From: Auanema rhodensis
Lineage: Eukaryota > Animalia > Nematoda
Direction of reading: 5' to 3'
NCBI GenBank assembly: GCA_964057225.1
Contig: OZ059897.1
Coordinates: 5,704,001 to 5,768,000 of the forward strand
Length of the DNA: 64,000 nt
This document shows positions 2,876-30,526 of this stretch, in pieces. Below the pieces are notes generated by a model. It ran no database searches. It saw only the letters and a list, made by a program, of their open reading frames with translations, and was not told the origin of the DNA. Every line of letters starts with the position of its first letter. Position 1 is the stretch's first letter. Position numbers and translations under genes: made by a program.

Positions 2876-3625
2876 ATGGATGGTAGTGTTATAGATGAAC
2901 AGTACACAACGGATGATGTATGTAAATCTGTGGTTTCCAAAAATTTTGCTTTTCTTTTAGGCTTCTCTTGGTTCTTTTGTATATTTCGTAAATCCTCGTC
3001 AATATAATCGAATAATCAGTAGAAGGATAGCTAAAGAGAAAATGATCAAAGAAGGTCGATGGCCTGATAAAAGACAAGTTTTGTACCTTACAGTAACAGT
3101 TCATCTAAACTCCTTTTAGAGAATAATGCATGCATCACGGAGCCGACATAGTATATGCCGTACCCGAACTGCTGATGGCAAATTTGCAGGTTTTTACATT
3201 TTTTTTTCAAAGAAAAACCAGTTTATAATAAGGCGGGTCATCTAGTCTTGAATCTAATCCTGTCTCGATAGGACCTACTACTAGTTCGTCTATTCCTGGC
3301 AGTAGTCAGGACGGTACGAAGGTGACCGTTAATGAGCCGGAGAAACAGCCTCTGAAAGAAGCAAGGTGGGCTGTTCTTTTTAGACTAAGTTAATTAGGTA
3401 TAGCACAGATGGGTTCCTATTGTTCCTGGCAACAGGTCTCCCGAATATCCTCATCTGCCCTGTGGTTTCTTTGTAAAATTGGACCCTTCTCACGTAGGCT
3501 TGAATATCAAATTTTAAGATTGACATTTTTTTTTGCTTAAAGAGTGGACAAGTTGAAGTAGTTGTGGAGCCCGATGGGTCAATTTTTGTTAGACCAGCTG
3601 AAGATCCACAACAGGCAGCGCCACC

Positions 3626-3667
<42 letters not shown>

Positions 3668-3671
3668 GCAG

Positions 3672-3712
<41 letters not shown>

Positions 3713-3737
3713 GCAGCAACAACAACAGCAAAACTAA
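2876..3737 (+). CDS. Divergent NF-YA (CBF-B/HAP2 domain) with a C-terminal poly-glutamine (Q35); about 6 exons
   Basis: ATG at 2876 follows a TTATAG acceptor. Spliced translation FVNPRQYNRIISRRIAKEKMIKEGRWPDKRQ/RIMHASRSRHSICRTRTADGKF aligns with the NF-YA core (YVNAKQYHRILKRR...YLHESRHRHAMARKRGEGGRF). Last exon SGQVEVVVEPDGSIFVRPAEDPQQAAPP-Q35-N*. Not in the ORF track. Confidence 0.85.
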
Positions 3738-4095
3738 TTAATAAAGTTTTCACCTTAATATATTTCAAATTCATTTTTGCGGGTACTTTGGGAATTTTAT
3801 AAGTACTAATATCATAATGCTTCATAATTTCTTTGATTTGATGCAATCTTATGTTTCATTCAAACATCTCTGTTCTTGTATATTTTTCTGTAGCTAAGCG
3901 AATGTTCCAAGCAGCTGGCTATTAATTTTTAATATCGTGCTAGGATACAACTGCCACATACACTACCATCTTTGTCTCTCGGACCATACTTTTCTTATTT
4001 AACAAGCACTAATTTATTGTCTTATTCGTTAAATTGTAATAAACATTAACATGTAACTTTACCTGTGTTGTAGATGATTGTTGGCAAGAAGGAAG
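3346..4095 (+). repeat. 750-bp direct repeat, left copy (NF-YA 3' end, spacer, first 22 nt of the paraoxonase-like CDS)
   Basis: Matches 29777-30526 at a constant offset of 26431; only difference seen is A3402 versus T29833. Confidence 0.97.
3627..3731 (+). repeat. CAA/CAG trinucleotide tract encoding Q35 (second copy at 30058-30162)
   Basis: 105 nt of CAA/CAG codons in frame with the NF-YA last exon. Confidence 0.95.
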
Positions 4096-4100
4096 ATTAG
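4074..4100 (+). pseudogene. Truncated start of the paraoxonase-like gene (MIVGKKED*)
   Basis: ATG at 4074 corresponds to ATG 30505; the frame enters the junction filler and stops at TAG 4098-4100. Confidence 0.8.
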
Positions 4101-4126
4101 ACTTAAAAAGAGAAAATTCAAGATTA

Positions 4127-7100
4127 ACTGAACACAACGTGCGTACAGCCTGAACTATTTTGTGAACAAATCTTGTGGATGGGGTCGATATAAACCGTTT
4201 TTCCGGAACCTGGAAACGTTTTACCGAAATCTCACCAAGATTTTCAGAATCTACACATCTGAATACCTAACCTCAGATTATTTTTATTTGATTTTAGTTA
4301 ATGATCTGTGAGAAAGACGGACATTCACTGAACACAACGTGCCTACAGCCTGAACTATTTTGTGAACAAATCTTGTGGATGGGGTCGATATAAACCGTTT
4401 TTCCGGAACCTGGAAACGTTTTACCGAAATCTCACCAAGATTTTCAGAATCTACACATCTGAATACCTAACCTCAGATTATTTTTATTTGATTTTAGTTA
4501 ATGATCTGTGAGAAAGACGGACATTCACTGAACACAACGTGCCTACAGCCTGAACTATTTTGTGAACAAATCTTGTGGATGGGGTCGATATAAACCGTTT
4601 TTCCGGAACCTGGAAACGTTTTACCGAAATCTCACCAAGAATTTCAGAATCTACACATCTGAATACCTAACCTCAGATTATTTTTATTTGATTTTAGCTA
4701 ATGATCTGTGAGAAAGACGGACATTCACTGAACACAACGTGCCTACAGCCTGAACTATTTTGTGAACAAATCTTGTGGATGGGGTCGATATAAACCGTTT
4801 TTCCGGAACCTGGAAACGTTTGACCGAAATCTCACCAAGGAGTCAGAATCTACACATCTGAATACCTAACCTCAGATTATTTTTATTTGATTTTAGCTAA
4901 TGATCTGTGAGAAAGACGGACATTCACTGAACACAACGTGCCTACAGCCTGAACTATTTTGTGAACAAATCTTGTGGATGGGGTCGATATAAACCGTTTT
5001 TCCGGAACCTGGAAACGTTTTACCGAAATCTCACCAAGAATTTCAGAATCTACACATCTGAATACCTAACCTCAGATTATTTTTATTTGATTTTAGTTAA
5101 TGATCTGTGAGAAAGACGGACATTCACTGAACACAACGTGCCTACAGCCTGAACTATTTTGTGAACAAATCTTGTGGATGGGGTCGATATAAACCGTTTT
5201 TCCGGAACCTGGAAACGTTTTACCGAAATCTCACCAAGATTTTCAGAATCTACACATCTGAATACCTAACCTCAGATTATTTTTATTTGATTTTAGTTAA
5301 TGATCTGTGAGAAAGACGGACATTCACTGAACACAACGTGCCTACAGCCTGAACTATTTTGTGAACAAATCTTGTGGATGGGGTCGATATAAACCGTTTT
5401 TCCGGAACCTGGAAACGTTTGACCGGAATCTCACCAAGAATTTCAGAATCTACACATCTGAATACCTAACCTCAGATTATTTTTATTTGATTTTAGTTAA
5501 TGATCTGTGAGAAAGACGGACATTCACTGAACACAACGTGCCTACAGCCTGAACTATTTTGTGAACAAATCTTGTGGATGGGGTCGATATAAACCATTTT
5601 TCCGGAACCTGGAAACGTTTTACCGAAATCTCACCAAGATTTTCAGAATCTACACATCTGAATACCTAACCTCAGATTATTTTTATTTGATTTTAGTTAA
5701 TGATCTGTGAGAAAGACGGACATTCACTGAACACAACGTGCCTACAGCCTGAACTATTTTGTGAACAAATCTTGTGGATGGGGTCGATATAAACCGTTTT
5801 TCCGGAACCTGGAAACGTTTTACCGAAATCTCACCAAGAATTTCAGAATCTACACATCTGAATACCTAACCTCAGATTATTTTTATTTGATTTTAGCTAA
5901 TGATCTGTGAGAAAGACGGACATTCACTGAACACAACGTGCCTACAGCCTGAACTATTTTGTGAACAAATCTTGTGGATGGGGTCGATATAAACCGTTTT
6001 TCCGGAACCTGGAAACGTTTGACCGAAATCTCACCAAGGAGTCAGAATCTACACATCTGAATACCTAACCTCAGATTATTTTTATTTGATTTTAGCTAAT
6101 GATCTGTGAGAAAGACGGACATTCACTGAACACAACGTGCCTACAGCCTGAACTATTTTGTGAACAAATCTTGTGGATGGGGTCGATATAAACCGTTTTT
6201 CCGGAACCTGGAAACGTTTGACCGAAATCTCAACAAGAATTTCAGAATCTACACATCTGAATACCTAACCTCAGATTATTTTTATTTGATTTTAGTTAAT
6301 GATCTGTGAGAAAGACGGACATTCACTGAACACAACATGCCTACAGCCTGAAGTATTTTGTGAACAAATCTTGTGGATGGGGTCGATATAAACCGTTTTT
6401 CCGGAACCTGGAAACGTTTGACCGAAATCTCACCAAGAATTTCAGAATCTACACATCTGAATACCTAACCTCAGATTATTTTTATTTGATTTTAGTTAAT
6501 GATCTGTGAGAAAGACGGACATTCACTGAACACAACGTGCCTACAGCCTGAACTATTTTGTGAACAAATCTTGTGGATGGGGTCGATATAAACCGTTTTT
6601 CCGGAACCTCGAAACGTTTTACCGAAATCTCACCAAGAATTTCAGAATCTACACATCTGAATACCTAACCTCAGATTATTTTTATTTGATTTTAGTTAAT
6701 GATCTGTGAGAAAGACGGACATTCACTGAACACAACGTGCCTACAGCCTGAACTATTTTGTGAACAAATCTTGTGGATGGGGTCGATAAAAACCGTTTTT
6801 CCGGAACCTCGAAACGTTTTACCGAAATCTCACCAAGAATTTCAGAATCTACACATCTGAATACCTAACCTCAGATTATTTTTATTTGATTTTAGTTAAT
6901 GATCTGTGAGAAAGACGGACATTCACTGAACACAACGTGCCTACAGCCTGAACTATTTTGTGAACAAATCTTGTGGATGGGGTCGATAAAAACCGTTTTT
7001 CCGGAACCTGGAAACGTTTTACCGAAATCTCACCAAGAATTTCAGAATCTACACATCTGAATACCTAACCTCAGATTATTTTTATTTGATTTTAGTAAAT

Positions 7101-10100
7101 GATCTGTGAGAAAGACGGACATTCACTGAACACAACGTGCCTACAGCCTGAACTATTTTGTGAACAAATCTTGTGGATGGGGTCGATATAAACCGTTTTT
7201 CCGGAACCTCGAAACGTTTTACCGGAATCTCACCAAGAATTTCAGAATCTACACATCTGAATACCTAACCTCAGATTATTTTTATTTGATTTTAGTAAAT
7301 GATCTGTGAGAAAGACGGACATTCACTGAACACAACGTGCCTACAGCCTGAACTATTTTGTGAACAAATCTTGTGGATGGGGTCGATAAAAACCGTTTTT
7401 CCGGAACCTGGAAACGTTTTACCGAAATCTCACCAAGAATTTCAGAATCTACACATCTGAATACCTAACCTCAGATTATTTTTATTTGATTTTAGTTAAT
7501 GATCTGTGAGAAAGACGGACATTCACTGAACACAACGTGCCTACAGCCTGAACTATTTTGTGAACAAATCTTGTGGATGGGGTCGATATAAACCGTTTTT
7601 CCGGAACCTCGAAACGTTTTACCGGAATCTCACCAAGAATTTCAGAATCTACACATCTGAATACCTAACCTCAGATTATTTTTATTTGATTTTAGTAAAT
7701 GATCTGTGAGAAAGACGGACATTCACTGAACACAACGTGCCTACAGCCTGAACTATTTTGTGAACAAATCTTGTGGATGGGGTCGATATAAACCGTTTTT
7801 CCGGAACCTGGAAACGTTTGACCGAAATCTCACCAAGAATTTCAGAATCTACACATCTGAATACCTAACCTCAGATTATTTTTATTTGATTTTAGTTAAT
7901 GATCTGTGAGAAAGACGGACATTCACTGAACACAACGTGCCTACAGCCTGAACTATTTTGTGAACAAATCTTGTGGATGGGGTCGATATAAACCGTTTTT
8001 CCGGAAGCTGGAAACGTTTGACCGAAATCTCACCAAGAATTTCAGAATCTACACATCTGAATACCTAACCTCAGATTATTTTTATTTGATTTTAGTTAAT
8101 GATCTGTGAGAAAGACGGACATTCACTGAACACAACGTGCCTACAGCCTGAACTATTTTGTGAACAAATCTTGTGGATGGGGTCGATATAAACCGTTTTT
8201 CCGGAACCTGGAAACGTTTGACCGAAATCTCAGCAAGAATTTCAGAATCTACACATCTGAATACCTAACCTCAGATTACTTTTATTTGATTTTAGTTAAT
8301 GATCTGTGAGAAAGACGGACATTCACTGAACACAACGTGCCTACAGCCTGAACTATTTTGTGAACAAATCTTGTGGATGGGGTCGATATAAACCGTTTTT
8401 CCGGAACCTCGAAACGTTTTACCGGAATCTCACCAAGAATTTCAGAATCTACACATCTGAATACCTAACCTCAGATTATTTTTATTTGATTTTAGTAAAT
8501 GATCTGTGAGAAAGACGGACATTCACTGAACACAACGTGCCTACAGCCTGAACTATTTTGTGAACAAATCTTGTGGATGGGGTCGATATAAACCGTTTTT
8601 CCGGAACCTGGAAACGTTTGACCGAAATCTCACCAAGAATTTCAGAATCTACACATCTGAATACCTAACCTCAGATTACTTTTATTTGATTTTAGTTAAT
8701 GGTCTGTGAGAAAGACGGACATTCACTGAACACAACGTGCCTACAGCCTGAACTATTTTGTGAACAAATCTTGTGGATGGGGTCGATATAAACCGTTTTT
8801 CCGGAACCTCGAAACGTTTTACCGAAATCTCACCAAGAATTTCAGAATCTACACATCTGAATACCTAACCTCAGATTATTTTTATTTGATTTTATTTAAT
8901 GATCTGTGAGAAAGACGGACATTCACTGAACACAACGTGCCTACAGCCTGAACTATTTTGTGAACAAATCTTGTGGATGGGGTCGATATAAACCGTTTTT
9001 CCGGAACCTGGAAACGTTTGACCGAAATCTCACCAAGAATTTCAGAATCTACACATCTGAATACCTAACCTCAGATTACTTTTATTTGATTTTAGTTAAT
9101 GGTCTGTGAGAAAGACGGACATTCACTGAACACAACGTGCCTACAGCCTGAACTATTTTGTGAACAAATCTTGTGGATGGGGTCGATATAAACCGTTTTT
9201 CCGGAACCTGGAAACGTTTTACCGAAATCTCACCAAGAATTTCAGAATCTACACATCTGAATACCTAACCTCAGATTATTTTTATTTGATTTTATTTAAT
9301 GATCTGTGAGAAAGACGGACATTCACTGAACACAACGTGCCTACAGCCTGAACTATTTTGTGAACAAATCTTGTGGATGGGGTCGATATAAACCGTTTTT
9401 CCGGAACCTCGAAACGTTTTACCGAAATCTCACCAAGAATTTCAGAATCTACACATCTGAATACCTAACCTCAGATTATTTTTATTTGATTTTATTTAAT
9501 GATCTGTGAGAAAGACGGACATTCACTGAACACAACGTGCCTACAGCCTGAACTATTTTGTGAACAAATCTTGTGGATGGGGTCGATATAAACCGTTTTT
9601 CCGGAACCTGGAAACGTTTGACCGAAATCTCACCAAGAATTTCAGAATCTACACATCTGAATACCTAACCTCAGATTATTTTTATTTGATTTTAGTTAAT
9701 GATCTGTGAGAAAGACGGACATTCACTGAACACAACGTGACTACAGCCTGAACTATTTTGTGAACAAATCTTGTGAATGAGGTCGATATAAACCGTTTTT
9801 CCGGAACCTGGAAACGTTTTACCGAAATCTCACCAAGGAGTCAGAATCTACACATCTGAATACCAAACCTCAGATTATTTTTATTTGATTTTAGTTAATG
9901 ATCTGTGAGAAAGACGGACATTCACTGAACACAACGTGACTACAGCCTGAACTATTTTGTGAACAAATCTTGTGAATGAGGTCGATATAAACCGTTTTTC
10001 CGGAACCTGGAAACGTTTTACCGAAATCTCACCAAGGAGTCAGAATCTACACATCTGAATAATAAACCTCAGATTATTTTTATTTGATTTTAGTTAATGA

Positions 10101-13100
10101 TCTGTGAGAAAGACGGACATTCACTGAACACAACGTGCCTACAGCCTGAACTATTTTGTGAACAAATCTTGTGAATGAGGTCGATATAAACCGTTTTTCC
10201 GGAACCTGGAAACGTTTTACCGAAATCTCACCAAGGAGTCAGAATCTACACATCTGAATAATAAACCTCAGATTATTTTTATTTGATTTTAGTTAATGAT
10301 CTGTGAGAAAGACGGACATTCACTGAACACAACGTGCCTACAGCCTGAACTATTTTGTGAACAAATCTTGTGAATGAGGTCGATATAAACCGTTTTTCCG
10401 GAACCTGGAAACGTTTGACCGAAATCTCACCAAGAATTTCAGAATCTACACATCTGAATACCTAACCTCAGATTACTTTTATTTGATTTTAGTTAATGAT
10501 CTGTGAGAAAGACGGACATTCACTGAACACAACGTGCCTACAGCCTGAACTATTTTGTGAACAAATCTTGTGGATGGGGTCGATATAAACCGTTTTTCCG
10601 GAACCTGGAAACGTTTAACCGAAATCTCACCAAGAATTTCAGAATCTACACATCTGAATACCAAACCTCAGATTATTTTTATTTGATTTTACTTAATGAT
10701 CTGTGAGAAAGACGGACATTCACTGAACACAACGTGCCTACAGCCTGAACTATTTTGTGAACAAATCTTGTGGATGGGGTCGATATAAACCGTTTTTCCG
10801 GAACCTCGAAACGTTTTACCGAAATCTCACCAAGAATTTCAGAATCTACACATCTGAATACCTAACCTCTTATTATTTTTATTTGATTTTAGTTAATGAT
10901 CTGTGAGAAAGACGGACATTCACTGAACACAACGTGCCTACAGCCTGAACTATTTTGTGAACAAATCTTGTGAATGGGGTCGATATAAACCGTTTTTCCG
11001 GAACCTGGAAACGTTTTACCGAAATCTCACCAAGAATTTCAGAATCTACACATCTGAATACTTAACCTCAGATTATTTTTATTTGATTTTATTTAATGAT
11101 CTGTGAGAAAGACGGACATTCACTGAACACAACGTGCCTACAGCCTGAACTATTTTGTGAACAAATCTTGTGGATGGGGTCGATATAAACCGTTTTTCCG
11201 GAACCTGGAAACGTTTTACCGAAATCTCACCAAGAATTTCAGAATCTACACATCTGAATACCTAACCTCAGATTATTTTTATTTGATTTTATTTAATGAT
11301 CTGTGAGAAAGACGGACATTCACTGAACACAACGTGCCTACAGCCTGAACTATTTTGTGAACAAATCTTGTGGATGTGGTCGATATAAACCGTTTTTCCG
11401 GAACCTCGAAACGTTTTACCGAAATCTCACCAAGGAGTCAGAATCTACACATCTGAATACCTAACCTCAGATTATTTTTATTTGATTTTAGTTAATGATC
11501 TGTGAGAAAGACGGACATTCACTGAACACAACGTGCCTACAGCCTGAACTATTTTGTGAACAAATCTTGTGGATGGGGTCGATATAAACCGTTTTTCCGG
11601 AACCTGGAAACGTTTTACCGAAATCTCACCAAGAATTTCAGAATCTACACATCTGAATACTTAACCTCAGATTATTTTTATTTGATTTTATTTAATGATC
11701 TGTGAGAAAGACGGACATTCACTGAACACAACGTGCCTACAGCCTGAACTATTTTGTGAACAAATCTTGTGGATGTGGTCGATATAAACCGTTTTTCCGG
11801 AACCTCGAAACGTTTTACCGAAATCTCACCAAGGAGTCAGAATCTACACATCTGAATACTTAACCTCAGATTATTTTTATTTGATTTTATTTAATGATCT
11901 GTGAGAAAGACGGACATTCACTGAACACAACGTGCCTACAGCCTGAACTATTTTGTGAACAAATCTTGTGGATGGGGTCGATATAAACCGTTTTTCCGGA
12001 ACCTGGAAACGTTTTACCGAAATCTCACCAAGAATTTCAGAATCTACACATCTGAATACCTAACCTCAGATTATTTTTATTTGATTTTATTTAATGATCT
12101 GTGAGAAAGACGGACATTCACTGAACACAACGTGCCTACAGCCTGAACTATTTTGTGAACAAATCTTGTGGATGGGGTCGATATAAACCGTTTTTCCGGA
12201 ACCTGGAAACGTTTTACCGAAATCTCACCAAGAATTTCAGAATCTACACATCTGAATACCTAACCTCAGATTATTTTTATTTGATTTTATTTAATGATCT
12301 GTGAGAAAGACGGACATTCACTGAACACAACGTGCCTACAGCCTGAACTATTTTGTGAACAAATCTTGTGGATGTGGTCGATATAAACCGTTTTTCCGGA
12401 ACCTCGAAACGTTTTACCGAAATCTCACCAAGAATTTCAGAATCTACACATCTGAATACCTAACCTCAGATTATTTTTATTTGATTTTAGTTAATGATCT
12501 GTGAGAAAGACGGACATTCACTGAACACAACGTGCCTACAGCCTGAACTATTTTGTGAACAAATCTTGTGGATGGGGTCGATATAAACCGTTTTTCCGGA
12601 ACCTCGAAACGTTTTACCGAAATCTCACCAAGAATTTCAGAATCTACACATCTGAATACCTAACCTCAGATTATTTTTATTTGATTTTAGTTAATGATCT
12701 GTGAGAAAGACGGACATTCACTGAACACAACGTGCCTACAGCCTGAACTATTTTGTGAACAAATCTTGTGGATGTGGTCGATATAAACCGTTTTTCCGGA
12801 ACCTCGAAACGTTTTACCGAAATCTCACCAAGAATTTCAGAATCTACACATCTGAATACCTAACCTCAGATTATTTTTATTTGATTTTAGTTAATGATCT
12901 GTGAGAAAGACGGACATTCACTGAACACAACGTGCCTACAGCCTGAACTATTTTGTGAACAAATCTTGTGGATGGGGTCGATATAAACCGTTTTTCCGGA
13001 ACCTGGAAACGTTTTACCGAAATCTCACCAAGAATTTCAGAATCTACACATCTGAATACTTAACCTCAGATTATTTTTATTTGATTTTATTTAATGATCT

Positions 13101-16100
13101 GTGAGAAAGACGGACATTCACTGAACACAACGTGCCTACAGCCTGAACTATTTTGTGAACAAATCTTGTGGATGGGGTCGATATAAACCGTTTTTCCGGA
13201 ACCTCGAAACGTTTTACCGAAATCTCACCAAGAATTTCAGAATCTACACATCTGAATACCTAACCTCAGATTATTTTTATTTGATTTTATTTAATGATCT
13301 GTGAGAAAGACGGACATTCACTGAACACAACGTGCCTACAGCCTGAACTATTTTGTGAACAAATCTTGTGGATGGGGTCGATATAAACCGTTTTTCCGGA
13401 ACCTCGAAACGTTTTACCGAAATCTCACCAAGGAGTCAGAATCTACACATCTGAATACCTAACCTCAGATTATTTTTATTTGATTTTAGTTAATGATCTG
13501 TGAGAAAGACGGACATTCACTGAACACAACGTGCCTACAGCCTGAACTATTTTGTGAACAAATCTTGTGGATGGGGTCGATATAAACCGTTTTTCCGGAA
13601 CCTGGAAACGTTTGACCGAAATCTCACCAAGAATTTCAGAATCTACACATTTGAATACCTAACCTCAGATTATTTTTATTTGATTTTAGTTAATGATCTG
13701 TGAGAAATACGGACATTCACTGAACACAACGTGCCTACAGCCTGAACTATTTTGTGAACAAATCTTGTGAATGAGGTCGATATAAACCGTTTTTCCGGAA
13801 CCTCGAAACGTTTTACCGAAATCTCACCAAGAATTTCAGAATCTACACATCTGAATACCTAACCTCTGATTATTTTTATTTGATTTTAGTTAATGATCTG
13901 TGAGAAAGACGGACATTCACTGAACACAACGTGCCTACAGCCTGAACTATTTTGTGAACAAATCTTGTGAATGAGGTCGATATAAACCGTTTTTCCGGAA
14001 CCTGGAAACGTTTTACCGAAATCTCACCAAGGAGTCAGAATCTACACATCTGAATACCAAACCTCAGATTATTTTTATTTGATTTTAGTTAATGATCTGT
14101 GAGAAAGACGGACATTCACTGAACACAACGTGCCTACAGCCTGAACTATTTTGTGAACAAATCTTGTGAATGAGGTCGATATAAACCGTTTTTCCGGAAC
14201 CTGGAAACGTTTTACCGAAATCTCACCAAGGAGTCAGAATCTACACATCTGAATACCAAACCTCAGATTATTTTTATTTGATTTTAGTTAATGATCTGTG
14301 AGAAAGACGGACATTCACTGAACACAACGTGCCTACAGCCTGAACTATTTTGTGAACAAATCTTGTGAATGAGGTCGATATAAACCGTTTTTCCGGAACC
14401 TGGAAACGTTTGACCGAAATCTCACCAAGAATTTCAGAATCTACACATCTGAATACCTAACCTCAGATTACTTTTATTTGATTTTAGTTAATGATCTGTG
14501 AGAAAGACGGACATTCACTGAACACAACGTGCCTACAGCCTGAACTATTTTGTGAACAAATCTTGTGAATGGGGTCGATATAAACCGTTTTTCCGGAACC
14601 TGGAAACGTTTTACCGAAATCTCACCAAGAATTTCAGAATCTACACATCTGAATACCAAACCTCAGATTATTTTTATTTGATTTTAGTTAATGATCTGTG
14701 AGAAAGACGGACATTCACTGAACACAACGTGCCTACAGCCTGAACTATTTTGTGAACAAATCTTGTGAATGAGGTCGATATAAACCGTTTTTCCGGAACC
14801 TGGAAACGTTTTACCGAAATCTCACCAAGAATTTCAGAATCTACACATCTGAATACCAAACCTCAGATTATTTTTATTTGATTTTACTTAATGATCTGTG
14901 AGAAAGACGGACATTCACTGAACACAACGTGCCTACAGCCTGAACTATTTTGTGAACAAATCTTGTGGATGGGGTCGATATAAACCGTTTTTCCGGAACC
15001 TGGAAACGTTTTACCGAAATCTCACCAAGAATTTCAGAATCTACACATCTGAATACCAAACCTCAGATTATTTTTGTTTGATTTTAGTTAATGATCTGTG
15101 AGAAAGACGGACATTCACTGAACACAACGTGCCTACAGCCTGAACTATTTTGTGAACAAATCTTGTGGATGGGGTCGATATAAACCGTTTTTCCGGAACC
15201 TCGAAACGTTTTACCGAAATCTCACCAAGAATTTCAGAATCTACACATCTGAATACCTAACCTCTTATTATTTTTATTTGATTTTAGTTAATGATCTGTG
15301 AGAAAGACGGACATTCACTGAACACAACGTGCCTACAGCCTGAACTATTTTGTGAACAAATCTTGTGGATGGGGTCGATATAAACCGTTTTTCCGGAACC
15401 TCGAAACGTTTTACCGAAATCTCACCAAGAATTTCAGAATCTACACATCTGAATACCTAACCTCTTATTATTTTTATTTGATTTTAGTTAATGATCTGTG
15501 AGAAAGACGGACATTCACTGAACACAACGTGCCTACAGCCTGAACTATTTTGTGAACAAATCTTGTGAATGGGGTCGATATAAACCGTTTTTCCGGAACC
15601 TGGAAACGTTTTACCGAAATCTCACCAAGAATTTCAGAATCTACACATCTGAATACTTAACCTCAGATTATTTTTATTTGATTTTAGTTAATGATCTGTG
15701 AGAAAGACGGACATTCACTGAACACAACGTGCCTACAGCCTGAACTATTTTGTGAACAAATCTTGTGAATGGGGTCGATATAAACCGTTTTTCCGGAACC
15801 TGGAAACGTTTTACCGAAATCTCACCAAGAATTTCAGAATCTACACATCTGAATACTTAACCTCAGATTATTTTTATTTGATTTTAGTTAATGATCTGTG
15901 AGAAAGACGGACATTCACTGAACACAACGTGCCTACAGCCTGAACTATTTTGTGAACAAATCTTGTGAATGGGGTCGATATAAACCGTTTTTCCGGAACC
16001 TGGAAACGTTTTACCGAAATCTCACCAAGAATTTCAGAATCTACACATCTGAATACCAAACCTCAGATTATTTTTATTTGATTTTAGTTAATGATCTGTG

Positions 16101-19100: not shown

Positions 19101-22100
19101 AGACGGACATTCACTGAACACAACGTGACTACAGCCTGAACTATTTTGTGAACAAATCTTGTGGATGGGGTCGATATAAACCGTTTTTCCGGAACCTGGA
19201 AACGTTTTACCGAAATCTTACCAAGAATTTCAGAATCTACACATCTGAATACCAAACCTCAGATTATTTTTATTTGATTTTAGTTAATGATCTGTGAGAA
19301 AAACGGACATTCACTGAACACAACGTGCCTACAGCCTGAACTATTTTGTGAACAAATCTTGTGAATGAGGTCGATATAAACCGTTTTTCCGGAACCTGGA
19401 AACGTTTTACCGAAATCTCACCAAGAATTTCAGAATCTACACATCTGAATACCTAACCTCAGATTATTTTTATTTGATTTTATTTAATGATCTGTGAGAA
19501 AGACGGACATTCACTGAACACAACGTGCCTACAGCCTGAACTATTTTGTGAACAAATCTTGTGGATGGGGTCGATATAAACCGTTTTTCCGGAACCTGGA
19601 AACGTTTTACCGAAATCTCACCAAGAATTTCAGAATCTACACATCTGAATACCTAACCTCTGATTATTTTTATTTGATTTTAGTTAATGATCTGTGAGAA
19701 AGACGGACATTCACTGAACACAACGTGCCTACAGCCTGAACTATTTTGTGAACAAATCTTGTGAATGAGGTCGATATAAACCGTTTTTCCGGAACCTGGA
19801 AACGTTTTACCGAAATCTCACCAAGGAGTCAGAATCTACACATCTGAATACCTAACCTCAGATTACTTTTATTTATTTTAGTTAATGATCTGTGAGAAAG
19901 ACGGACATTCACTGAACACAACGTGACTACAGCCTGAACTATTTTGTGAACAAATCTTGTGGATGGGGTCGATATAAACCGTTTTTCCGGAACCTGGAAA
20001 CGTTTTACCGAAATCTTACCAAGAATTTCAGAATCTACACATCTGAATACCTAACCTCTGATTATTTTTATTTGATTTTAGTTAATGATCTGTGAGAAAG
20101 ACGGACATTCACTGAACACAACGTGCCTACAGCCTGAACTATTTTGTGAACAAATCTTGTGAATGAGGTCGATATAAACCGTTTTTCCGGAACCTGGAAA
20201 CGTTTTACCGAAATCTCACCAAGGAGTCAGAATCTACACATCTGAATACCTAACCTCAGATTACTTTTATTTATTTTAGTTAATGATCTGTGAGAAAGAC
20301 GGACATTCACTGAACACAACGTGACTACAGCCTGAACTATTTTGTGAACAAATCTTGTGGATGGGGTCGATATAAACCGTTTTTCCGGAACCTGGAAACG
20401 TTTTACCGAAATCTTACCAAGAATTTCAGAATCTACACATCTGAATACCAAACCTCAGATTATTTTTATTTAATTTTAGTTAATGATCTGTGAGAAAAAC
20501 GGACATTCACTGAACACAACGTGCCTACAGCCTGAACTATTTTGTGAACAAATCTTGTGAATGAGGTCGATATAAACCGTTTTTCCGGAACCTGGAAACG
20601 TTTTACCGAAATCTCACCAAGGAGTCAGAATCTACACATCTGAATACCTAACCTCAGATTATTTTTATTTGATTTTAGTTAATGATCTGTGAGAAAGACG
20701 GACATTCACTGAACACAACGTGCCTACAGCCTGAACTATTTTGTGAACAAATCTTGTGAATGAGGTCGATATAAACCGTTTTTCCGGAACCTGGAAACGT
20801 TTTACCGAAATCTCACCAAGAATTTCAGAATCTACACATCTGAATACCAAACCTCAGATTATTTTTATTTGATTTTAGTTAATGATCTGTGAGAAAAACG
20901 GACATTCACTGAACACAACGTGCCTACAGCCTGAACTATTTTGTGAACAAATCTTGTGGATGGGGTCGATATAAACCGTTTTTCCGGAACCTGGAAACGT
21001 TTAACCGAAATCTCACCAAGAATTTCAGAATCTACACATCTGAATACCAAACCTCAGATTATTTTTATTTGATTTTAGTTAGTGATCTGTGAGAAAGACG
21101 GACATTCACTGAACACAACGTGCCTACAGCCTGAACTATTTTGTGAACAAATCTTGTGAATGGGGTCGATATAAACCGTTTTTCCGGAACCTGGAAACGT
21201 TTAACCGAAATCTCACCAAGAATTTCAGAATCTACAGATCTGAATACCAAACCTCAGATTATTTTTATTTGATTTTAGTTAATGATCTGTGAGAAAGACG
21301 GACATTCACTGAACACAACGTGCCTACAGCCTGAACTATTTTGTGAACAAATCTTGTGGATGGGGTCGATATAAACCGTTTTTCCGGAACCTCGAAACGT
21401 TTTACCGAAATCTCACCAAGAATTTCAGAATCTACACATCTGAATACCTAACCTCAGATTATTTTTATTTGATTTTAGTTAATGATCTGTGAGAAAGACG
21501 GACATTCACTGAACACAACGTGCCTACAGCCTGAACTATTTTGTGAACAAATCTTGTGAATGGGGTCGATATAAACCGTTTTTCCGGAACGTGGAAACGT
21601 TTTACCGAAATCTCACCAAGAATTTCAGAATCTACACATCTGAATACTTAACCTCAGATTATTTTTATTTGATTTTAGTTAATGATCTGTGAGAAAGACG
21701 GACATTCACTGAACACAACGTGCCTACAGCCTGAACTATTTTGTGAACAAATCTTGTGAATGGGGTCGATATAAACCGTTTTTCCGGAACGTGGAAACGT
21801 TTTACCGAAATCTCACCAAGAATTTCAGAATCTACACATCTGAATACCTAACCTCAGATTATTTTTATTTGATTTTAGTTAATGATCTGTGAGAAAGACG
21901 GACATTCACTGAACACAACGTGCCTACAGCCTGAACTATTTTGTGAACAAATCTTGTGGATGGGGTCGATATAAACCGTTTTTCCGGAACGTGGAAACGT
22001 TTTACCGAAATCTCACCAAGGAGTCAGAATCTACACATCTGAATACCTAACCTCAGATTACTTTTATTTGATTTTAGTTAATGATCTGTGAGAAAGACGG

Positions 22101-25100
22101 ACATTCACTGAACACAACGTGACTACAGCCTGAACTATTTTGTGAACAAATCTTGTGGATGGGGTCGATATAAACCGTTTTTCCGGAACCTGGAAACGTT
22201 TTACCGAAATCTCACCAAGAATTTCAGAATCTACACATCTGAATACTTAACCTCAGATTATTTTTATTTGATTTTAGTTAATGATCTGTGAGAAAGACGG
22301 ACATTCACTGAACACAACGTGCCTACAGCCTGAACTATTTTGTGAACAAATCTTGTGGATGGGGTCGATATAAACCGTTTTTCCGGAACGTGGAAACGTT
22401 TTACCGAAATCTCACCAAGGAGTCAGAATCTACACATCTGAATACCTAACCTCAGATTACTTTTATTTGATTTTAGTTAATGATCTGTGAGAAAGACGGA
22501 CATTCACTGAACACAACGTGCCTACAGCCTGAACTATTTTGTGAACAAATCTTGTGGATGGGGTCGATATAAACCGTTTTTCCGGAACGTGGAAACGTTT
22601 TACCGAAATCTCACCAAGGAGTCAGAATCTACACATCTGAATACCTAACCTCAGATTACTTTTATTTGATTTTAGTTAATGATCTGTGAGAAAGACGGAC
22701 ATTCACTGAACACAACGTGACTACAGCCTGAACTATTTTGTGAACAAATCTTGTGGATGGGGTCGATATAAACCGTTTTTCCGGAACCTGGAAACGTTTT
22801 ACCGAAATCTCACCAAGAATTTCAGAATCTACACATCTGAATACCTAACCTCAGATTATTTTTATTTGATTTTATTTAATGATCTGTGAGAAAGACGGAC
22901 ATTCACTGAACACAACGTGCCTACAGCCTGAACTATTTTGTGAACAAATCTTGTGGATGGGGTCGATATAAACCGTTTTTCCGGAACCTGGAAACGTTTT
23001 ACCGAAATCTCACCAAGAATTTCAGAATCTACACATCTGAATACCTAACCTCAGATTATTTTTATTTGATTTTAGTTAATGATCTGTGAGAAAGACGGAC
23101 ATTCACTGAACACAACGTGCCTACAGCCTGAACTATTTTGTGAACAAATCTTGTGGATGGGGTCGATATAAACCGTTTTTCCGGAACCTGCAAACGTTTT
23201 ACCGAAATCTCACCAAGAATTTCAGAATCTACACATCTGAATACCTAACCTCAGATTATCTTTATTTGATTTTAGTTAATGATCTGTGAGAAAGACGGAC
23301 ATTCACTGAACACAACGTGACTACAGCCTGAACTATTTTGTGAACAAATCTTGTGGATGGGGTCGATATAAACCGTTTTTCCGGAACCTGCAAACGTTTT
23401 ACCGAAATCTCACCAAGAATTTCAGAATCTACACATCTGAATACCTAACCTCAGATTATCTTTATTTGATTTTAGTTAATGATCTGTGAGAAAGACGGAC
23501 ATTCACTGAACACAACGTGCCTACAGCCTGAACTATTTTGTGAACAAATCTTGTGGATGGGGTCGATATAAACCGTTTTTCCGGAACCTGCAAACGTTTT
23601 ACCGAAATCTCACCAAGAATTTCAGAATCTACACATCTGAATACCTAACCTCAGATTATCTTTATTTGATTTTAGTTAATGATCTGTGAGAAAGACGGAC
23701 ATTCACTGAACACAACGTGACTACAGCCTGAACTATTTTGTGAACAAATCTTGTGGATGGGGTCGATATAAACCGTTTTTCCGGAACCTGGAAACGTTTT
23801 ACCGAAATCTCACCAAGAATTTCAGAATCTACACATCTGAATACTTAACCTCAGATTATTTTTATTTGATTTTAGTTAATGATCTGTGAGAAAGACGGAC
23901 ATTCACTGAACACAACGTGCCTACAGCCTGAACTATTTTGTGAACAAATCTTGTGGATGGGGTCGATATAAACCGTTTTTCCGGAACGTGGAAACGTTTT
24001 ACCGAAATCTCACCAAGGAGTCAGAATCTACACATCTGAATACCTAACCTCAGATTACTTTTATTTGATTTTAGTTAATGATCTGTGAGAAAGACGGACA
24101 TTCACTGAACACAACGTGACTACAGCCTGAACTATTTTGTGAACAAATCTTGTGGATGGGGTCGATATAAACCGTTTTTCCGGAACCTGGAAACGTTTTA
24201 CCGAAATCTCACCAAGAATTTCAGAATCTACACATCTGAATACCTAACCTCAGATTATTTTTATTTGATTTTATTTAATGATCTGTGAGAAAGACGGACA
24301 TTCACTGAACACAACGTGCCTACAGCCTGAACTATTTTGTGAACAAATCTTGTGGATGGGGTCGATATAAACCGTTTTTCCGGAACCTGGAAACGTTTTA
24401 CCGAAATCTCACCAAGAATTTCAGAATCTACACATCTGAATACCTAACCTCAGATTATTTTTATTTGATTTTAGTTAATGATCTGTGAGAAAGACGGACA
24501 TTCACTGAACACAACGTGCCTACAGCCTGAACTATTTTGTGAACAAATCTTGTGGATGGGGTCGATATAAACCGTTTTTCCGGAACCTGCAAACGTTTTA
24601 CCGAAATCTCACCAAGAATTTCAGAATCTACACATCTGAATACCTAACCTCAGATTATCTTTATTTGATTTTAGTTAATGATCTGTGAGAAAGACGGACA
24701 TTCACTGAACACAACGTGCCTACAGCCTGAACTATTTTGTGAACAAATCTTGTGGATGGGGTCGATATAAACCGTTTTTCCGGAACCTGGAAACGTTTTA
24801 CCGAAATCTCACCAAGAATTTCAGAATCTACACATCTGAATACCTAACCTCAGATTATTTTTATTTGATTTTAGTTAATGATCTGTGAGAAAGACGGACA
24901 TTCACTGAACACAACGTGACTACAGCCTGAACTATTTTGTGAACAAATCTTGTGGATGGGGTCGATATAAACCGTTTTTCCGGAACGTGGAAACGTTTTA
25001 CCGAAATCTCACCAAGAATTTCAGAATCTACACATCTGAATACCTAACCTCAGATTATTTTTATTTGATTTTAGTTAATGATCTGTGAGAAAGACGGACA

Positions 25101-28100
25101 TTCACTGAACACAACGTGCCTACAGCCTGAACTATTTTGTGAACAAATCTTGTGGATGGGGTCGATATAAACCGTTTTTCCGGAACGTGGAAACGTTTTA
25201 CCGAAATCTCACCAAGGAGTCAGAATCTACATATCTGAATACCTAACCTCAGATTACTTTTATTTGATTTTAGTTAATGATCTGTGAGAAAGACGGACAT
25301 TCACTGAACACAACGTGCCTACAGCCTGAACTATTTTGTGAACAAATCTTGTGGATGGGGTCGATATAAACCGTTTTTCCGGAACCTGGAAACGTTTTAC
25401 CGAAATCTCACCAAGAATTTCAGAATCTACACATCTGAATACCTAACCTCTGATTATTTTTATTTGATTTTAGTGAATGATCTGTGAGAAAGACGGACAT
25501 TGACTGAACACAACGTGCCTACAGCCTGAACTATTTTGTGAACAAATCTTGTGGATGGGGTCGATATAAACCGTTTTTCCGGAACGTGGAAACGTTTTAC
25601 CGAAATCTCACCAAGGAGTCAGAATCTACACATCTGAATACCTAACCTCAGATTATTTTTATTTGATTTTAGTTAATGATCTGTGAGAAAGACGGACATT
25701 CACTGAACACAACGTGCCTACAGCCTGAACTATTTTGTGAACAAATCTTGTGGATGGGGTCGATATAAACCGTTTTTCCGGAACCTGGAAACGTTTTACC
25801 GAAATCTCACCAAGAATTTCAGAATCTACACATCTGAATACCTAACCTCTGATTATTTTTATTTGATTTTAGTTAATGATCTGTGAGAAAGACGGACATT
25901 CACTGAACACAACGTGCCTACAGCCTGAACTATTTTGTGAACAAATCTTGTGGATGGGGTCGATATAAACCGTTTTTCCGGAACCTGGAAACGTTTTACC
26001 GAAATCTCACCAAGAATTTCAGAATCTACACATCTGAATACCTAACCTCTTATTATTTTTATTTGATTTTAGTTAATGATCTGTGAGAAAGACGGACATT
26101 CACTGAACACAACGTGCCTACAGCCTGAACTATTTTGTGAACAAATCTTGTGGATGGGGTCGATATAAACCGTTTTTCCGGAACCTGGAAACGTTTTACC
26201 GAAATCTCACCAAGAATTTCAGAATCTACACATCTGAATACCTAACCTCAGATTATTTTTATTTGATTTTATTTAATGATCTGTGAGAAAGACGGACATT
26301 CACTGAACACAACGTGCCTACAGCCTGAACTATTTTGTGAACAAATCTTGTGGATGGGGTCGATATAAACCGTTTTTCCGGAACCTGGAAACGTTTTACC
26401 GAAATCTCACCAAGAATTTCAGAATCTACACATCTGAATACCTAACCTCAGATTATTTTTATTTGATTTTAGTTAATGATCTGTGAGAAAGACGGACATT
26501 CACTGAACACAACGTGCCTACAGCCTGAACTATTTTGTGAACAAATCTTGTGGATGGGGTCGATATAAACCGTTTTTCCGGAACCTGCAAACGTTTTACC
26601 GAAATCTCACCAAGAATTTCAGAATCTACACATCTGAATACCTAACTTCAGATTATTTTTATTTGATTTTAGTTAATGATCTGTGAGAAAGACGGACATT
26701 CACTGAACACAACGTGCCTACAGCCTGAACTATTTTGTGAACAAATCTTGTGGATGGGGTCGATATAAACCGTTTTTCCGGAACCTGGAAACGTTTGACC
26801 GAAATCTCACCAAGAATTTCAGAATCTACACATCTGAATACCTAACCTCAGATTATTTTTATTTGATTTTAGTGAATGATCTGTGAGAAAGACGGACATT
26901 CACTGAACACAACGTGCCTACAGCCTGAACTATTTTGTGAACAAATCTTGTGGATGGGGTCGATATAAACCGTTTTTCCGGAACCTGGAAACGTTTTACC
27001 GAAATCTCACCAAGAATTTCAGAATCTACACATCTGAATACCTAACCTCAGATTATTTTTATTTGATTTTAGTTAATGATCTGTGAGAAAGACGGACATT
27101 CACTGAACACAACGTGCCTACAGCCTGAACTATTTTGTGAACAAATCTTGTGGATGGGGTCGATATAAACCGTTTTTCCGGAACCTGGAAACGTTTTACC
27201 GAAATCTCACCAAGAATTTCAGAATCTACACATCTGAATACCTAACCTCAGATTATTTTTATTTGATTTTAGTTAATGATCTGTGAGAAAGACGGACATT
27301 CACTGAACACAACGTGCCTACAGCCTGAACTATTTTGTGAACAAATCTTGTGGATGGGGTCGATATAAACCGTTTTTCCGGAACCTGGAAACGTTTGACC
27401 GAAATCTCACCAAGAATTTCAGAATCTACACATCTGAATACCTAACCTCAGATTATTTTTATTTGATTTTAGTGAATGATCTGTGAGAAAGACGGACATT
27501 CACTGAACACAACGTGCCTACAGCCTGAACTATTTTGTGAACAAATCTTGTGGATGGGGTCGATATAAACCGTTTTTCCGGAACCTGGAAACGTTTTACC
27601 GAAATCTCACCAAGAATTTCAGAATCTACACATCTGAATACCTAACCTCAGATTACTTTTATTTGATTTTAGTTAATGATCTGTGAGAAAGACGGACATT
27701 CACTGAACACAACGTGCCTACAGCCTGAACTATTTTGTGAACAAATCTTGTGGATGGGGTCGATATAAACCGTTTTTCCGGAACCTGGAAACGTTTTACC
27801 GAAATCTCACCAAGAATTTCAGAATCTACACATCTGAATACCTAACCTCAGATTATTTTTATTTGATTTTAGTTAATGATCTGTGAGAAAGACGGACATT
27901 CACTGAACACAACGTGCCTACAGCCTGAACTATTTTGTGAACAAATCTTGTGGATGGGGTCGATATAAACCGTTTTTCCGGAACCTGGAAACGTTTGACC
28001 GAAATCTCACCAAGAATTTCAGAATCTACACATCTGAATACCTAACCTCAGATTATTTTTATTTGATTTTAGTGAATGATCTGTGAGAAAGACGGACATT

Positions 28101-29777
28101 CACTGAACACAACGTGCCTACAGCCTGAACTATTTTGTGAACAAATCTTGTGGATGGGGTCGATATAAACCGTTTTTCCGGAACCTGGAAACGTTTTACC
28201 GAAATCTCACCAAGAATTTCAGAATCTACACATCTGAATACCTAACCTCAGATTATTTTTATTTGATTTTAGTTAATGATCTGTGAGAAAGACGGACATT
28301 CACTGAACACAACGTGCCTACAGCCTGAACTATTTTGTGAACAAATCTTGTGGATGGGGTCGATATAAACCGTTTTTCCGGAACCTGGAAACGTTTTACC
28401 GAAATCTCACCAAGAATTTCAGAATCTACACATCTGAATACCTAACCTCAGATTATTTTTATTTGATTTTATTTAATGATCTGTGAGAAAGACGGACATT
28501 CACTGAACACAACGTGCCTACAGCCTGAACTATTTTGTGAACAAATCTTGTGGATGGGGTCGATATAAACCGTTTTTCCGGAACCTGGAAACGTTTTACC
28601 GAAATCTCACCAAGGAGTCAGAATCTACACATCTGAATACCTAACCTCAGATTACTTTTATTTGATTTTAGTTAATGATCTGTGAGAAAGACGGACATTC
28701 ACTGAACACAACGTGCCTACAGCCTGAACTATTTTGTGAACAAATCTTGTGGATGGGGTCGATATAAACCGTTTTTCCGGAACGTGGAAACGTTTTACCG
28801 AAATCTCACCAAGGAGTCAGAATCTACACATCTGAATACCTAACCTCAGATTACTTTTATTTGATTTTAGTTAATGATCTGTGAGCAAGACGGACATTCA
28901 CTGAACACAACGTGCCTACAGCCTGAACTATTTTGTGAACAAATCTTGTGGATGGGGTCGATATAAACCGTTTTTCCGGAACCTTGAAACGTTTTACCGA
29001 AATCTCACCAAGAATTTCAGAATCTACACATCTGAATACCTAACCTCTGATTATTTTTATTTGATTTTAGTGAATGATCTGTGAGAAAGACGGACATTCA
29101 CTGAACACAACGTGCCTACAGCCTGAACTATTTTGTGAACAAATCTTGTGGATGGGGTCGATATAAACCGTTTTTCCGGAACCTGGAAACGTTTTACCGA
29201 AATCTCACCAAGAATTTCAGAATCTACACATCTGAATACCTAACCTCAGATTATTTTTATTTGATTTTAGTTAATGATCTGTGAGAAAGACGGACATTCA
29301 CTGAACACAACGTGCCTACAGCCTGAACTATTTTGTGAACAAATCTTGTGGATGGGGTCGATATAAACCGTTTTTCCGGAACCTGGAAACGTTTTACCGA
29401 AATCTCACCAAGAATTTCAGAATCTACACATCTGAATACCTAACCTCAGATTATTTTTATTTGATTTTAGTTAATGATCTGTGAGAAAGACGGACATTCA
29501 CTGAACACAACGTGCCTACAGCCTGAACTATTTTGTGAACAAATCTTGTGGATGGGGTCGATATAAACCGTTTTTCCGGAACCTGGAAACGTTTTACCGA
29601 AATCTCACCAAGAATTTCAGAATCTACACATCTGAATACCTAACCTCAGATTATTTTTATTTGATTTTAGTTAATGATCTGTGAGAAAGACGGACATTCA
29701 CTGAACACAACGTGCCTACAGCCTGAACTATTTTGTGAACAAATCTTGTGGATGGGGTCGATATAAACCGTTTTTCC
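4127..29777. repeat. Tandem satellite array, 200-bp monomer (some 199 bp), about 128 full copies plus a 78-nt partial
   Basis: Monomer ACTGAACACAACGTGCCTACAGCCTGAACTATTTTGTGAACAAATCTTGTGGATGGGGTCGATATAAACCGTTTTTCCGGAACCTGGAAACG...GAGAAAGACGGACATTC repeats head to tail without interruption, with only a few variant positions per copy. Confidence 0.99.
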
Positions 29778-30056
29778 AGCCTCTGAAAGAAGCAAGGTGG
29801 GCTGTTCTTTTTAGACTAAGTTAATTAGGTATTGCACAGATGGGTTCCTATTGTTCCTGGCAACAGGTCTCCCGAATATCCTCATCTGCCCTGTGGTTTC
29901 TTTGTAAAATTGGACCCTTCTCACGTAGGCTTGAATATCAAATTTTAAGATTGACATTTTTTTTTGCTTAAAGAGTGGACAAGTTGAAGTAGTTGTGGAG
30001 CCCGATGGGTCAATTTTTGTTAGACCAGCTGAAGATCCACAACAGGCAGCGCCACC

Positions 30057-30098
<42 letters not shown>

Positions 30099-30102
30099 GC
30101 AG

Positions 30103-30143
<41 letters not shown>

Positions 30144-30168
30144 GCAGCAACAACAACAGCAAAACTAA
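29777..30168 (+). pseudogene. Orphan duplicate of the NF-YA 3' exons (poly-Q tail) with no start codon or DNA-binding domain
   Basis: Copy of 3346-3737, preceded only by satellite. Confidence 0.8.
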
Positions 30169-30526
30169 TTAATAAAGTTTTCACCTTAATATATTTCAAA
30201 TTCATTTTTGCGGGTACTTTGGGAATTTTATAAGTACTAATATCATAATGCTTCATAATTTCTTTGATTTGATGCAATCTTATGTTTCATTCAAACATCT
30301 CTGTTCTTGTATATTTTTCTGTAGCTAAGCGAATGTTCCAAGCAGCTGGCTATTAATTTTTAATATCGTGCTAGGATACAACTGCCACATACACTACCAT
30401 CTTTGTCTCTCGGACCATACTTTTCTTATTTAACAAGCACTAATTTATTGTCTTATTCGTTAAATTGTAATAAACATTAACATGTAACTTTACCTGTGTT
30501 GTAGATGATTGTTGGCAAGAAGGAAG
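29777..30526 (+). repeat. 750-bp direct repeat, right copy
   Basis: Begins right after satellite TTTTTCC (1-nt C microhomology) and runs into the intact paraoxonase-like gene. Confidence 0.97.

Follow-up and report, generated by a model that had tools for sequence, protein, structure and literature searches.

A satellite cassette lies between an NF-YA-like gene and a paraoxonase/arylesterase-like gene in the window, the whole stretch of 64,000 nucleotides that was analysed and to which all positions refer. In order it consists of a 750-bp segment (copy A), a 27-nt filler, 128.4 monomers of 200 bp and the same 750-bp segment again (copy B). The cassette is a real, germline-inherited structural insertion in a gene-dense part of the chromosome, and it is paradoxical in that the array is private and old whereas its flanks are young. 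The chances are about even that a single break-repair event produced it: the duplication would stem from extension of one broken end, and end joining would have sealed in a satellite block that had been captured or copied.

Layout and junctions of the cassette

Alignment of the window with itself by BLAST gave a direct pair on the plus strand, copy A at 3346-4095 and copy B at 29777-30526, with 99.87% identity over 750 bp, one mismatch and no gaps. The sole mismatch, A at 3402 in copy A and T at 29833 in copy B, lies 56 bp from the duplication edge, and the (CAA/CAG) tract measures 35.3 units in each copy by Tandem Repeats Finder (3626-3731 in A and 30057-30162 in B). The single SNP and the equal poly-Q length described in an earlier sequence-only reading of this DNA are thereby confirmed. 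Copies A and B are the only occurrences of the segment in the 181-Mb genome, and the duplication is a head-to-tail repeat of unique sequence with sharp, arbitrary edges inside exons of two different genes.

The array occupies 4123-29776 on the plus strand. Tandem Repeats Finder reported it as a single array (4123-29777, period 200, 98% matches), and cutting into monomers gave 128 full units plus 82 nt, every one of them on the plus strand. The filler at the copy A-to-array junction (4096-4122, plus strand) is defined by alignment and covered by a 105-nt contig described below. The order of elements given by the sequence-only reading, with about 128 monomers, was correct; its filler of 31 nt was not, because 4 nt from the start of a monomer, slightly altered there, had been counted with it. 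The filler sequence is found nowhere else in the genome, and its alignment to monomer positions about 167-200 is no more than patchy. One 13-mer of it matches the minus strand at 30806-30818, 280 bp away, and coverage of the filler by nearby 6-7-mers was not significant (P 0.27 and 0.05). At the array-to-copy B junction one base is common with the monomer (C at 29777). The junctions are asymmetric, with 1-nt microhomology at one side and filler at the other.

No ORF longer than 74 aa was present in the array, where ORFs were monomer-periodic only, and no Rfam or tRNA match was found there. The flanks showed no terminal inverted repeats, no LTRs and no long direct repeats beyond the 750-bp pair, and the insert is uniform one-way satellite. 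These features, which bear out the absence of transposase, terminal inverted repeats and LTRs noted previously, indicate that the cassette is not a transposon insertion with a target-site duplication.

Both neighbouring genes remain whole

NF-YA-like exons on the plus strand extend from the left flank into copy A (2961-3367) and were assigned from Pfam, frame reading and sequence. When exons were searched singly, Pfam CBFB_NFYA matched those at 2961-3116 (E 3.6e-7) and 3120-3242 (E 0.0024). The left duplication edge (3346) falls inside the second-last NF-YA exon, 22 nt ahead of its GT donor, and copy A contains the end of this exon, the intron, the last exon with poly-Q and stop (3735-3737), the 3' UTR and spacer. 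The start and first exons of the paraoxonase-like gene run from copy B into the right flank (30505-31498, plus strand), an assignment from sequence and from weak Pfam Arylesterase matches, again with exons searched singly, at 31199-31348 (E 5e-4) and 31373-31498 (E 0.02). The right duplication edge lies 22 nt past the ATG of this gene, which is found at 4074 and at 30505. Copy A also carries these first 22 nt of coding sequence, and the frame opened there hits a stop at once in the filler. Copy B contains an orphan NF-YA 3' fragment, spacer and the working ATG at 30505. The spacer between the two genes is 337 bp.

Both genes are whole because the duplicated piece takes in the end of the NF-YA-like gene as well as the beginning of the paraoxonase-like gene. 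The gene calls, made from single-exon Pfam matches, agree with the earlier proposal of an intact NF-YA gene on the left and an intact paraoxonase-like gene on the right. The unusually long flanking duplication appears to have saved the two neighbours, and survival of the allele is probably owed to both of them staying whole.

The cassette in independent reads

Read evidence was taken from the contigs of four public runs (X1, X4, X7 and X9), seemingly of one strain lineage; such contigs demonstrate presence, not absence. The 105-nt contig, from run X4 of a different study (2019), spans 4066-4170 from copy A through the filler into the array with 0 mismatches, and depth at this junction was 0.86x flank. 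A contig of run X1 terminates exactly at 3346. Contig depth over the 750-bp segment was 1.6-1.8x flank in runs X1 and X4. For private variants of the array in runs X7 and X9, 4 assembled copies corresponded to a depth of 3.07x, 92 copies to 69-108x and 10-16 copies to 10-12x. Monomer variants were present at about 0.8-1.0x flank depth per copy, and each of the four runs carries the array at a per-copy depth close to that of the flanks.

Misplacement of the array or of the second 750-bp copy by the assembler would be a familiar kind of mistake, satellite arrays and repeats at contig joins being classic error sources. The poly-Q tract breaks every contig, and the whole cassette is spanned by no single record. 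Against this stand the mismatch-free junction contig from an independent study, a contig end in X1 at exactly the position expected of a graph branch point, depth over the segment about twice that of the flanks, and variant copy numbers in two further runs that agree with the assembled array. The artefact test that had been proposed, based on junction coverage and segment depth, came out in favour of the assembly at the copy A-to-array junction and over the segment, and an artefact is very improbable.

A monomer subfamily private to the locus

Monomers of the array differ pairwise by 2.4% on average, against 0.13% between the two flanking copies. Blocks have been duplicated locally, with offsets of 2, 11 and about 20 monomers, and no long higher-order or array-wide period was found in the variant pattern. 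A rolling-circle signature was considered and rejected on this pattern without an array-wide period. Both array ends are consensus-like; degenerate edges were dropped as an age marker, being uninformative when other arrays of the family are equally sharp-edged.

Private words of 34 and 32 nt, allowing up to 2-3 mismatches, gave 128 matches each genome-wide; about 100 of these were listed for each word, and every listed one lies within the array. Among the matches listed, the monomer subfamily is private to the locus. The nearest other arrays are 82-89% identical to the monomer and further arrays 74-79%, placing the subfamily at 11-18% divergence from its nearest relatives. Other loci of the satellite family likewise carry their own subfamilies. 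No donor array was found by BLAST with the monomer, by private words or by looser words, the C1 and C3 arrays being more distant subfamilies. Dispersal by eccDNA should be marked by resemblance to a source array elsewhere in the genome, and the closest arrays found were those with 82-89% identity. Long flanking duplications, which the sequence-only reading proposed looking for at other arrays of this monomer, were seen at none of the four other arrays of the family that were checked.

Retention in body cells

In Auanema rhodense, satellites are eliminated in body cells by breakage at a palindromic motif and telomere addition. This involves 28 break sites with a 29-nt palindrome, telomere-healed ends and removal of multi-megabase blocks, and about 61% of the germline genome, mostly satellites, is discarded. 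Eliminated DNA has about 0.12x coverage in whole-worm samples (29/236). The cassette showed none of this strong reduction, its copy A junction and its monomers having the near-flank depths given above. Per-copy array depth is close to that of the flanks, and the cassette is therefore kept in body cells.

Signals of the elimination machinery were likewise absent from the places searched. No inverted repeat or palindrome was found at the cassette junctions, and the window contained no TTAGGC run and no match to TAGGC-N13-17-GCCTA, a putative break-site core. Among the contig ends listed there were no telomere-repeat loose ends. At the published chromosome 5 coordinate C5:16,502,174 no clear 29-nt palindrome was present at the exact position, where contig and scaffold coordinates may differ.

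Exact removal is permitted by the architecture: as had been pointed out, one crossover or single-strand annealing between A and B, whose starts are 26,431 bp apart, would rebuild the original locus. An element lost from body cells during development, or often lost and regained through the 750-bp repeats, would also suit a species that removes satellites in its body cells. Contigs of X7 and X9 pass both segment edges unbranched and leave the filler uncovered, which first suggested an empty allele in these runs. This was rejected because the poly-Q tract breaks every contig and because private variants are present in X7 and X9 at their assembled copy numbers; cleaning of the contig graph is the simplest explanation for the branches missing there. 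No record shows left flank, segment and right flank in one piece. Junction, segment and monomer depths (0.86x, 1.6-1.8x and about 0.8-1.0x per copy) are far from the 0.12x of eliminated DNA, and the known elimination operates through its palindromic sites and telomeres, not through excision and rejoining. With no palindrome, telomere repeat or break-site-like core at hand either, a developmentally excised or reversible element is highly unlikely. The earlier idea of a reversible, polymorphic or soma-excised element gained no support, no evidence pointing to an empty allele, a circle or somatic loss. Its link to programmed elimination was sound in that the species has such a process and went astray in that the process works by breakage and telomere addition, of which there is no signal here.

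The cassette resembles the DNA eliminated in A. rhodense in being satellite, the main cargo of that process, and differs in having no break palindrome or telomeres and in being kept in body cells. A 26-kb array left alone in retained DNA agrees with elimination steered by break-site motifs rather than by repeat content.

Origin of the cassette

The satellite block must have formed before the last common ancestor of the flanks, because monomers differ by 2.4% and flanks by 0.13%. Monomer divergence arising later than the duplication would predict at least 18 differences between A and B, against the one seen (Poisson P about 2e-7), which suggests that the monomers of the block had diverged from one another before the two 750-bp copies parted. 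A diversified array between near-identical flanks is consistent with break repair that brought in an entire block. In such an event a double-strand break would have occurred in or beside the 337-bp spacer, and one broken end would have been extended by 750 nt on the sister or homologous chromosome, re-copying 3346-4095. The extended end may then have switched or been joined to a pre-existing 200-bp satellite block of at least 25.7 kb, cleanly and with 1-nt microhomology (29776/29777), and end joining would have connected the far end of the block with the remaining broken end, leaving the 27-nt filler. Such a repair would yield a segment repeated in tandem with foreign DNA between its two copies, equivalent to a 'target-site duplication' of 750 bp. 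What is inferred here is the sequence in which the steps followed one another, the origin of the satellite block and the pathway, whether polymerase-theta-type end joining or template switching. Kamp et al. 2020 (PMC7368036) propose that tandem duplications arise when polymerase theta links an end already lengthened on the sister chromatid to its partner, at times adding an insertion, and by analogy the junction asymmetry of the cassette would suit this model.

Several observations weigh against a single event. A copy-type event should leave its template behind and no donor was found; the own subfamilies at other loci suggest that arrays of this family are old residents; no significant templating of the filler by nearby sequence was seen; and the tandem duplications of C. 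elegans brc-1 mutants, described below, are larger and lack such an insert. Of the recent whole-block insertion proposed by the sequence-only reading, a block diversified beforehand is upheld, and simple copying from a donor is not shown. A bolder and rather unlikely reading is that a long-established private array of at least 25.7 kb moved whole, as a circle or linear fragment, into the 337-bp spacer, its source then being lost and the 750-bp duplication left behind. If true, this would be a base-resolved footprint of the relocation of a satellite block in a nematode that both makes and discards satellite DNA in huge quantity, and the allele could be polymorphic in wild populations and reversible by recombination between A and B.

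The main rival of a single event is an old insertion and duplication, with the array evolving in place and the flanks kept alike by repeated gene conversion (concerted evolution). It needs no donor and would account for a private subfamily whose closest relatives are 11-18% away, a situation shared with other loci of the family, and for the history of local block duplications. The position of the sole difference between A and B, 56 bp from the edge, is where conversion tracts reach least often. However, a pair of direct repeats undergoing frequent conversion would be expected to lose the array as well, through crossover or single-strand annealing, and since deletion restores an intact locus, long persistence without selection would be hard to explain. 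The mutable (CAA/CAG)35 tract is moreover identical in A and B. The array ends are undegraded beyond the 27-nt filler, a weak point given that other arrays are sharp-edged too. On balance gene conversion is possible, at clearly lower probability than the single break-repair event.

An old array and young flanks could also result from two steps, in which an array without a duplication disrupted one gene and a later break at its edge was repaired from an intact allele together with end joining. The later repair would add the second 750-bp copy and restore the gene, and a degenerate filler at one edge with a clean cut at the other would follow. This calls for two rare events in the same place and for a null allele that persisted over a long time, is required by nothing observed, and is unlikely.

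Relation to known systems

Two opposite-strand nicks some distance apart yield a direct duplication of the stretch between them, a non-transposon 'target-site duplication'. Vaughn and Bennetzen in 2014 and Schiml et al. in 2016 are said to have traced tandem duplications to staggered single-strand breaks or patch repair, the duplications reportedly being tens to about a hundred bp long and without a large foreign insert. The cassette differs from these in having a 750-bp duplication and a large foreign insert.

How satellites arrive in gene-rich DNA is still debated, with circles, template switching, transposons and gene conversion all under discussion. Junctions that still bear a repair scar are rare, and this locus offers both at base resolution. 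Extrachromosomal circles or microhomology have carried the Drosophila 1.688 and Rsp-like satellites into gene-rich regions (Sproul et al. 2020; PMC7403614), and the same kind of spread is described for Tribolium Cast satellites (PMC11610590). In the parts of these papers drawn on here, the likeness lies in lone arrays between genes without transposon features and with minimal junction homology. The same parts have new arrays that resemble arrays elsewhere, whereas the subfamily here is private, and describe no long flanking duplication comparable to the 750 bp seen here.

Tandem duplications in C. elegans brc-1/brd-1 mutants range from 1 kb to 1 Mb, and none reported for brc-1 has a 25-kb insert (PMC7368036). 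They share with the cassette the head-to-tail repetition of unique DNA, junctions with 0-1 nt homology or an insertion, and a nematode germline. The cassette differs in that its 750-bp duplication is below the reported 1-kb minimum, in that its junction holds a 25.7-kb satellite block where theirs hold inserts of a few to tens of nt, and in being a natural allele. Taken alone, the cassette amounts to one structural variant of neutral appearance and does not constitute a new system. Related work of the C. elegans type on tandem duplications concerns helq-1 and tnsl-1.

Structure of the cassette

Comparison of the window with itself by BLAST identified two copies of a 750-bp segment on the + strand, copy A (3346–4095) and copy B (29777–30526), aligning with no gaps and one mismatch, an A at 3402 in copy A corresponding to a T at 29833 in copy B. 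Tandem Repeats Finder reported one intervening array (4123–29777) of 128.4 repeats with a period of 200, together with the same (CAA/CAG) tract, 35.3 units long, in copies A and B. When cut into units the array gave 128 complete monomers and a remainder of 82 nt, in + orientation throughout, with every monomer 95–100% identical to a reference unit. A 27-nt filler that matches nothing else in the genome separates copy A from the array, whilst the array/copy B junction is clean, with one shared base (29777). Across the 181-Mb assembly the 750-bp segment has these two copies and no others. Self-BLAST, repeat finding and monomer cutting thus bear out, in every measurable point, the cassette described in the sequence-only reading.

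Support in independent reads

Fifteen public sequencing runs contain this stretch, all as contigs, and four (X1, X4, X7 and X9) were compared with window positions 1500–4400, leaving out the poly-Q tract (3613–3738), at which every contig stops. A 105-nt contig from X4, which belongs to a different study from X1, covers 4066–4170 with 0 differences and joins copy A, filler and array at a depth of 257, against 234–347 in flank contigs. In X1 a contig terminates exactly at 3346, as expected for a branch point in the contig graph, and depth over the 750-bp segment is 1969–2031 compared with 924–1510 in the flank (approximately 1.8x); the corresponding ratio in X4 is approximately 1.6x. The duplication and the copy A/array junction are therefore present in the reads, and the junction contig together with the raised segment depth rules out an assembler-made artefact. 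At position 3402 all four runs contain only T, the copy B state, and the A of the assembly appears in no contig; it may exist only in the reads used for the assembly, or may have been lost from the contigs through bubble popping.

In X7 and X9, long contigs cross both outer edges of the segment without a branch, linking it to the left flank on one side and to the right flank on the other, and none lies on the filler. Interpretation of these runs as an empty site was rejected, because the full cassette would yield the same two contig halves. Two sequences private to this monomer subfamily (34 and 32 nt) have 128 genome matches each, and all of the approximately 100 listed per search fall within this array. 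Contigs with such array-private sequences are present in X7 and X9 at depths agreeing with assembled copy numbers: an exact 60-mer with 4 assembled copies has 3.07x single-copy depth in X7, an exact 80-mer with 92 copies has 69–108x in X9, and variants with 10–16 copies have 10–12x. Both runs therefore carry the same array, and the simplest explanation for the absent branches is graph cleaning beside a very deep repeat. No contig of the four runs joins left flank, segment and right flank, because every one ends at the poly-Q tract; an empty allele was not seen among these contigs, none of which crosses that tract.

Programmed DNA elimination

The suggestion that the cassette might be eliminated from the soma is reasonable for these worms, yet does not apply here, and its excision is likewise not supported. 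According to a 2026 preprint on a 180.9-Mb germline assembly of the inbred line APS4, Auanema rhodense body cells discard approximately 61% of germline DNA, chiefly satellite blocks of several megabases. Loss begins at 28 internal sites that carry a 29-nt palindrome and receive new telomeres, and coverage is 29x for eliminated against 236x for retained DNA. In contrast, there is no inverted repeat at either cassette junction, no telomere repeat in the window and no putative break-motif core (TAGGC-N13-17-GCCTA) at the cassette. Depth at the copy A/array junction is 0.86x that of the flanks and monomers are at approximately 0.8–1.0x per copy; the array is retained in body cells.

History of the satellite block

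The closest arrays of the 200-bp family, on the chromosome-level sequences C5 and C6, are 86–89% identical by BLAST (82–84% by consensus), and those on C1 and C3 are 74–79% identical. A subfamily of its own at each locus is a tendency across the family. Superfamily loci lie at C1:14.61 Mb, C3:15.89 and 17.95 Mb, C5:7.30 Mb, and C6:4.26–4.78 and 13.36 Mb, with 74–95% identity between loci and 97–100% within, neighbouring C6 arrays being exceptional in having a common consensus. At G000:C5:7296242-7306272, in the assembly under study, a family array (7296554–7303246) is accompanied by an inverted repeat whose 299-bp arms are 98.7% identical. One arm stops 15 bp short of the array and the other (7305974–7306272) lies 2.7 kb past its end; the arrangement may be a foldback or terminal-inverted-repeat element carrying satellite.

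Within the cassette, monomers differ pairwise by a mean of 2.4%, and variants are clustered locally, with block duplications at lags of 2, 11 and approximately 20 monomers. The variant pattern lacks an array-wide period, which speaks against an origin by rolling-circle copying from a small circle. Had all monomers diversified after the duplication, at least 18 differences between copies A and B would be expected; one was observed (Poisson P ~2e-7), indicating that the array was already diverse at the last common ancestor of the copies. That ancestry dates either from the insertion or from a subsequent gene-conversion event. The chief rival to recent insertion of a whole block is an old insertion whose flanks have been homogenised through gene conversion; this reading requires no donor but must explain how the array has escaped deletion by repeats converting so frequently. 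Both array ends are consensus-like, and their sharpness gives no date because other family arrays are equally sharp-edged. Recent insertion, as originally proposed, is plausible but unproven.

Mechanism

Transposition is excluded, as the array has neither coding capacity nor terminal repeats, in agreement with the lack of transposon features first noticed. The architecture is a head-to-tail 750-bp duplication with foreign DNA at the junction, an uncommon form of an already known class of repair product. PMC7368036 proposes a model for nematode tandem duplications in which the sister chromatid is invaded by a broken end; after extension and release, that end is joined to the other by polymerase-theta-mediated end joining, sometimes with an insertion. 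The cassette matches this architecture, with the addition of a satellite block of at least 25.7 kb. A broken end would have been extended on the sister chromatid and released, would then have switched into, or been ligated to, the block, and would have been closed by polymerase-theta-mediated end joining; the outcome would be identical had two staggered breaks been filled in. The filler shows no significant templating from nearby sequence, so the pathway itself is one that we infer. A filler 13-mer (4105–4117) is the reverse complement of 30806–30818, 280 bp into the right flank (chance approximately 0.04, a rough estimate), and may be what is left of templated synthesis as the ends were joined. 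The absent donor array is the main weakness of the break-repair reading; it could have been lost, could have been polymorphic before inbreeding of the line, or could be part of germline-only DNA missing from the assembly. No flanking duplication was found at four other arrays of the family. The main value of the cassette is as a clean, testable locus for how satellite blocks move.

Neighbouring genes

Pfam searches used individual, unjoined exons. Translations of 2961–3116 and 3120–3242 matched CBFB_NFYA, and those of 31199–31348 and 31373–31498 gave weak Arylesterase matches, representing the NF-YA-like and paraoxonase-like genes, respectively. The duplication begins within the second-last NF-YA exon, 22 nt short of its donor site, contains the intron, poly-Q last exon, stop codon, 3′ UTR and a 337-bp spacer, and ends 22 nt past the paraoxonase-like ATG. 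Both neighbours are intact, as the sequence-only reading held: copy A completes NF-YA as read from the left, and copy B together with the right flank gives an unbroken paraoxonase-like gene. Left over are an eight-codon paraoxonase-like stub in copy A, with its stop in the filler, and an orphaned 3′ end of NF-YA in copy B.

The two genes may formerly have been an operon with a trans-spliced downstream gene, judging from their common strand and 337-bp separation, an AATAAA approximately 30 nt upstream of the paraoxonase-like ATG and an acceptor-like 'ttgtag' immediately 5′ of it (4039–4076 and 30470–30507). If so, the cassette now places 26 kb between the downstream gene and the upstream promoter. 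Further out, translations read by eye include open reading frame pieces resembling a HAT-repeat, cleavage-stimulation-factor-77-type gene upstream of NF-YA (60–2650) and a P-type (phospholipid-transporting) ATPase to the right of the paraoxonase-like gene (33400–34700).
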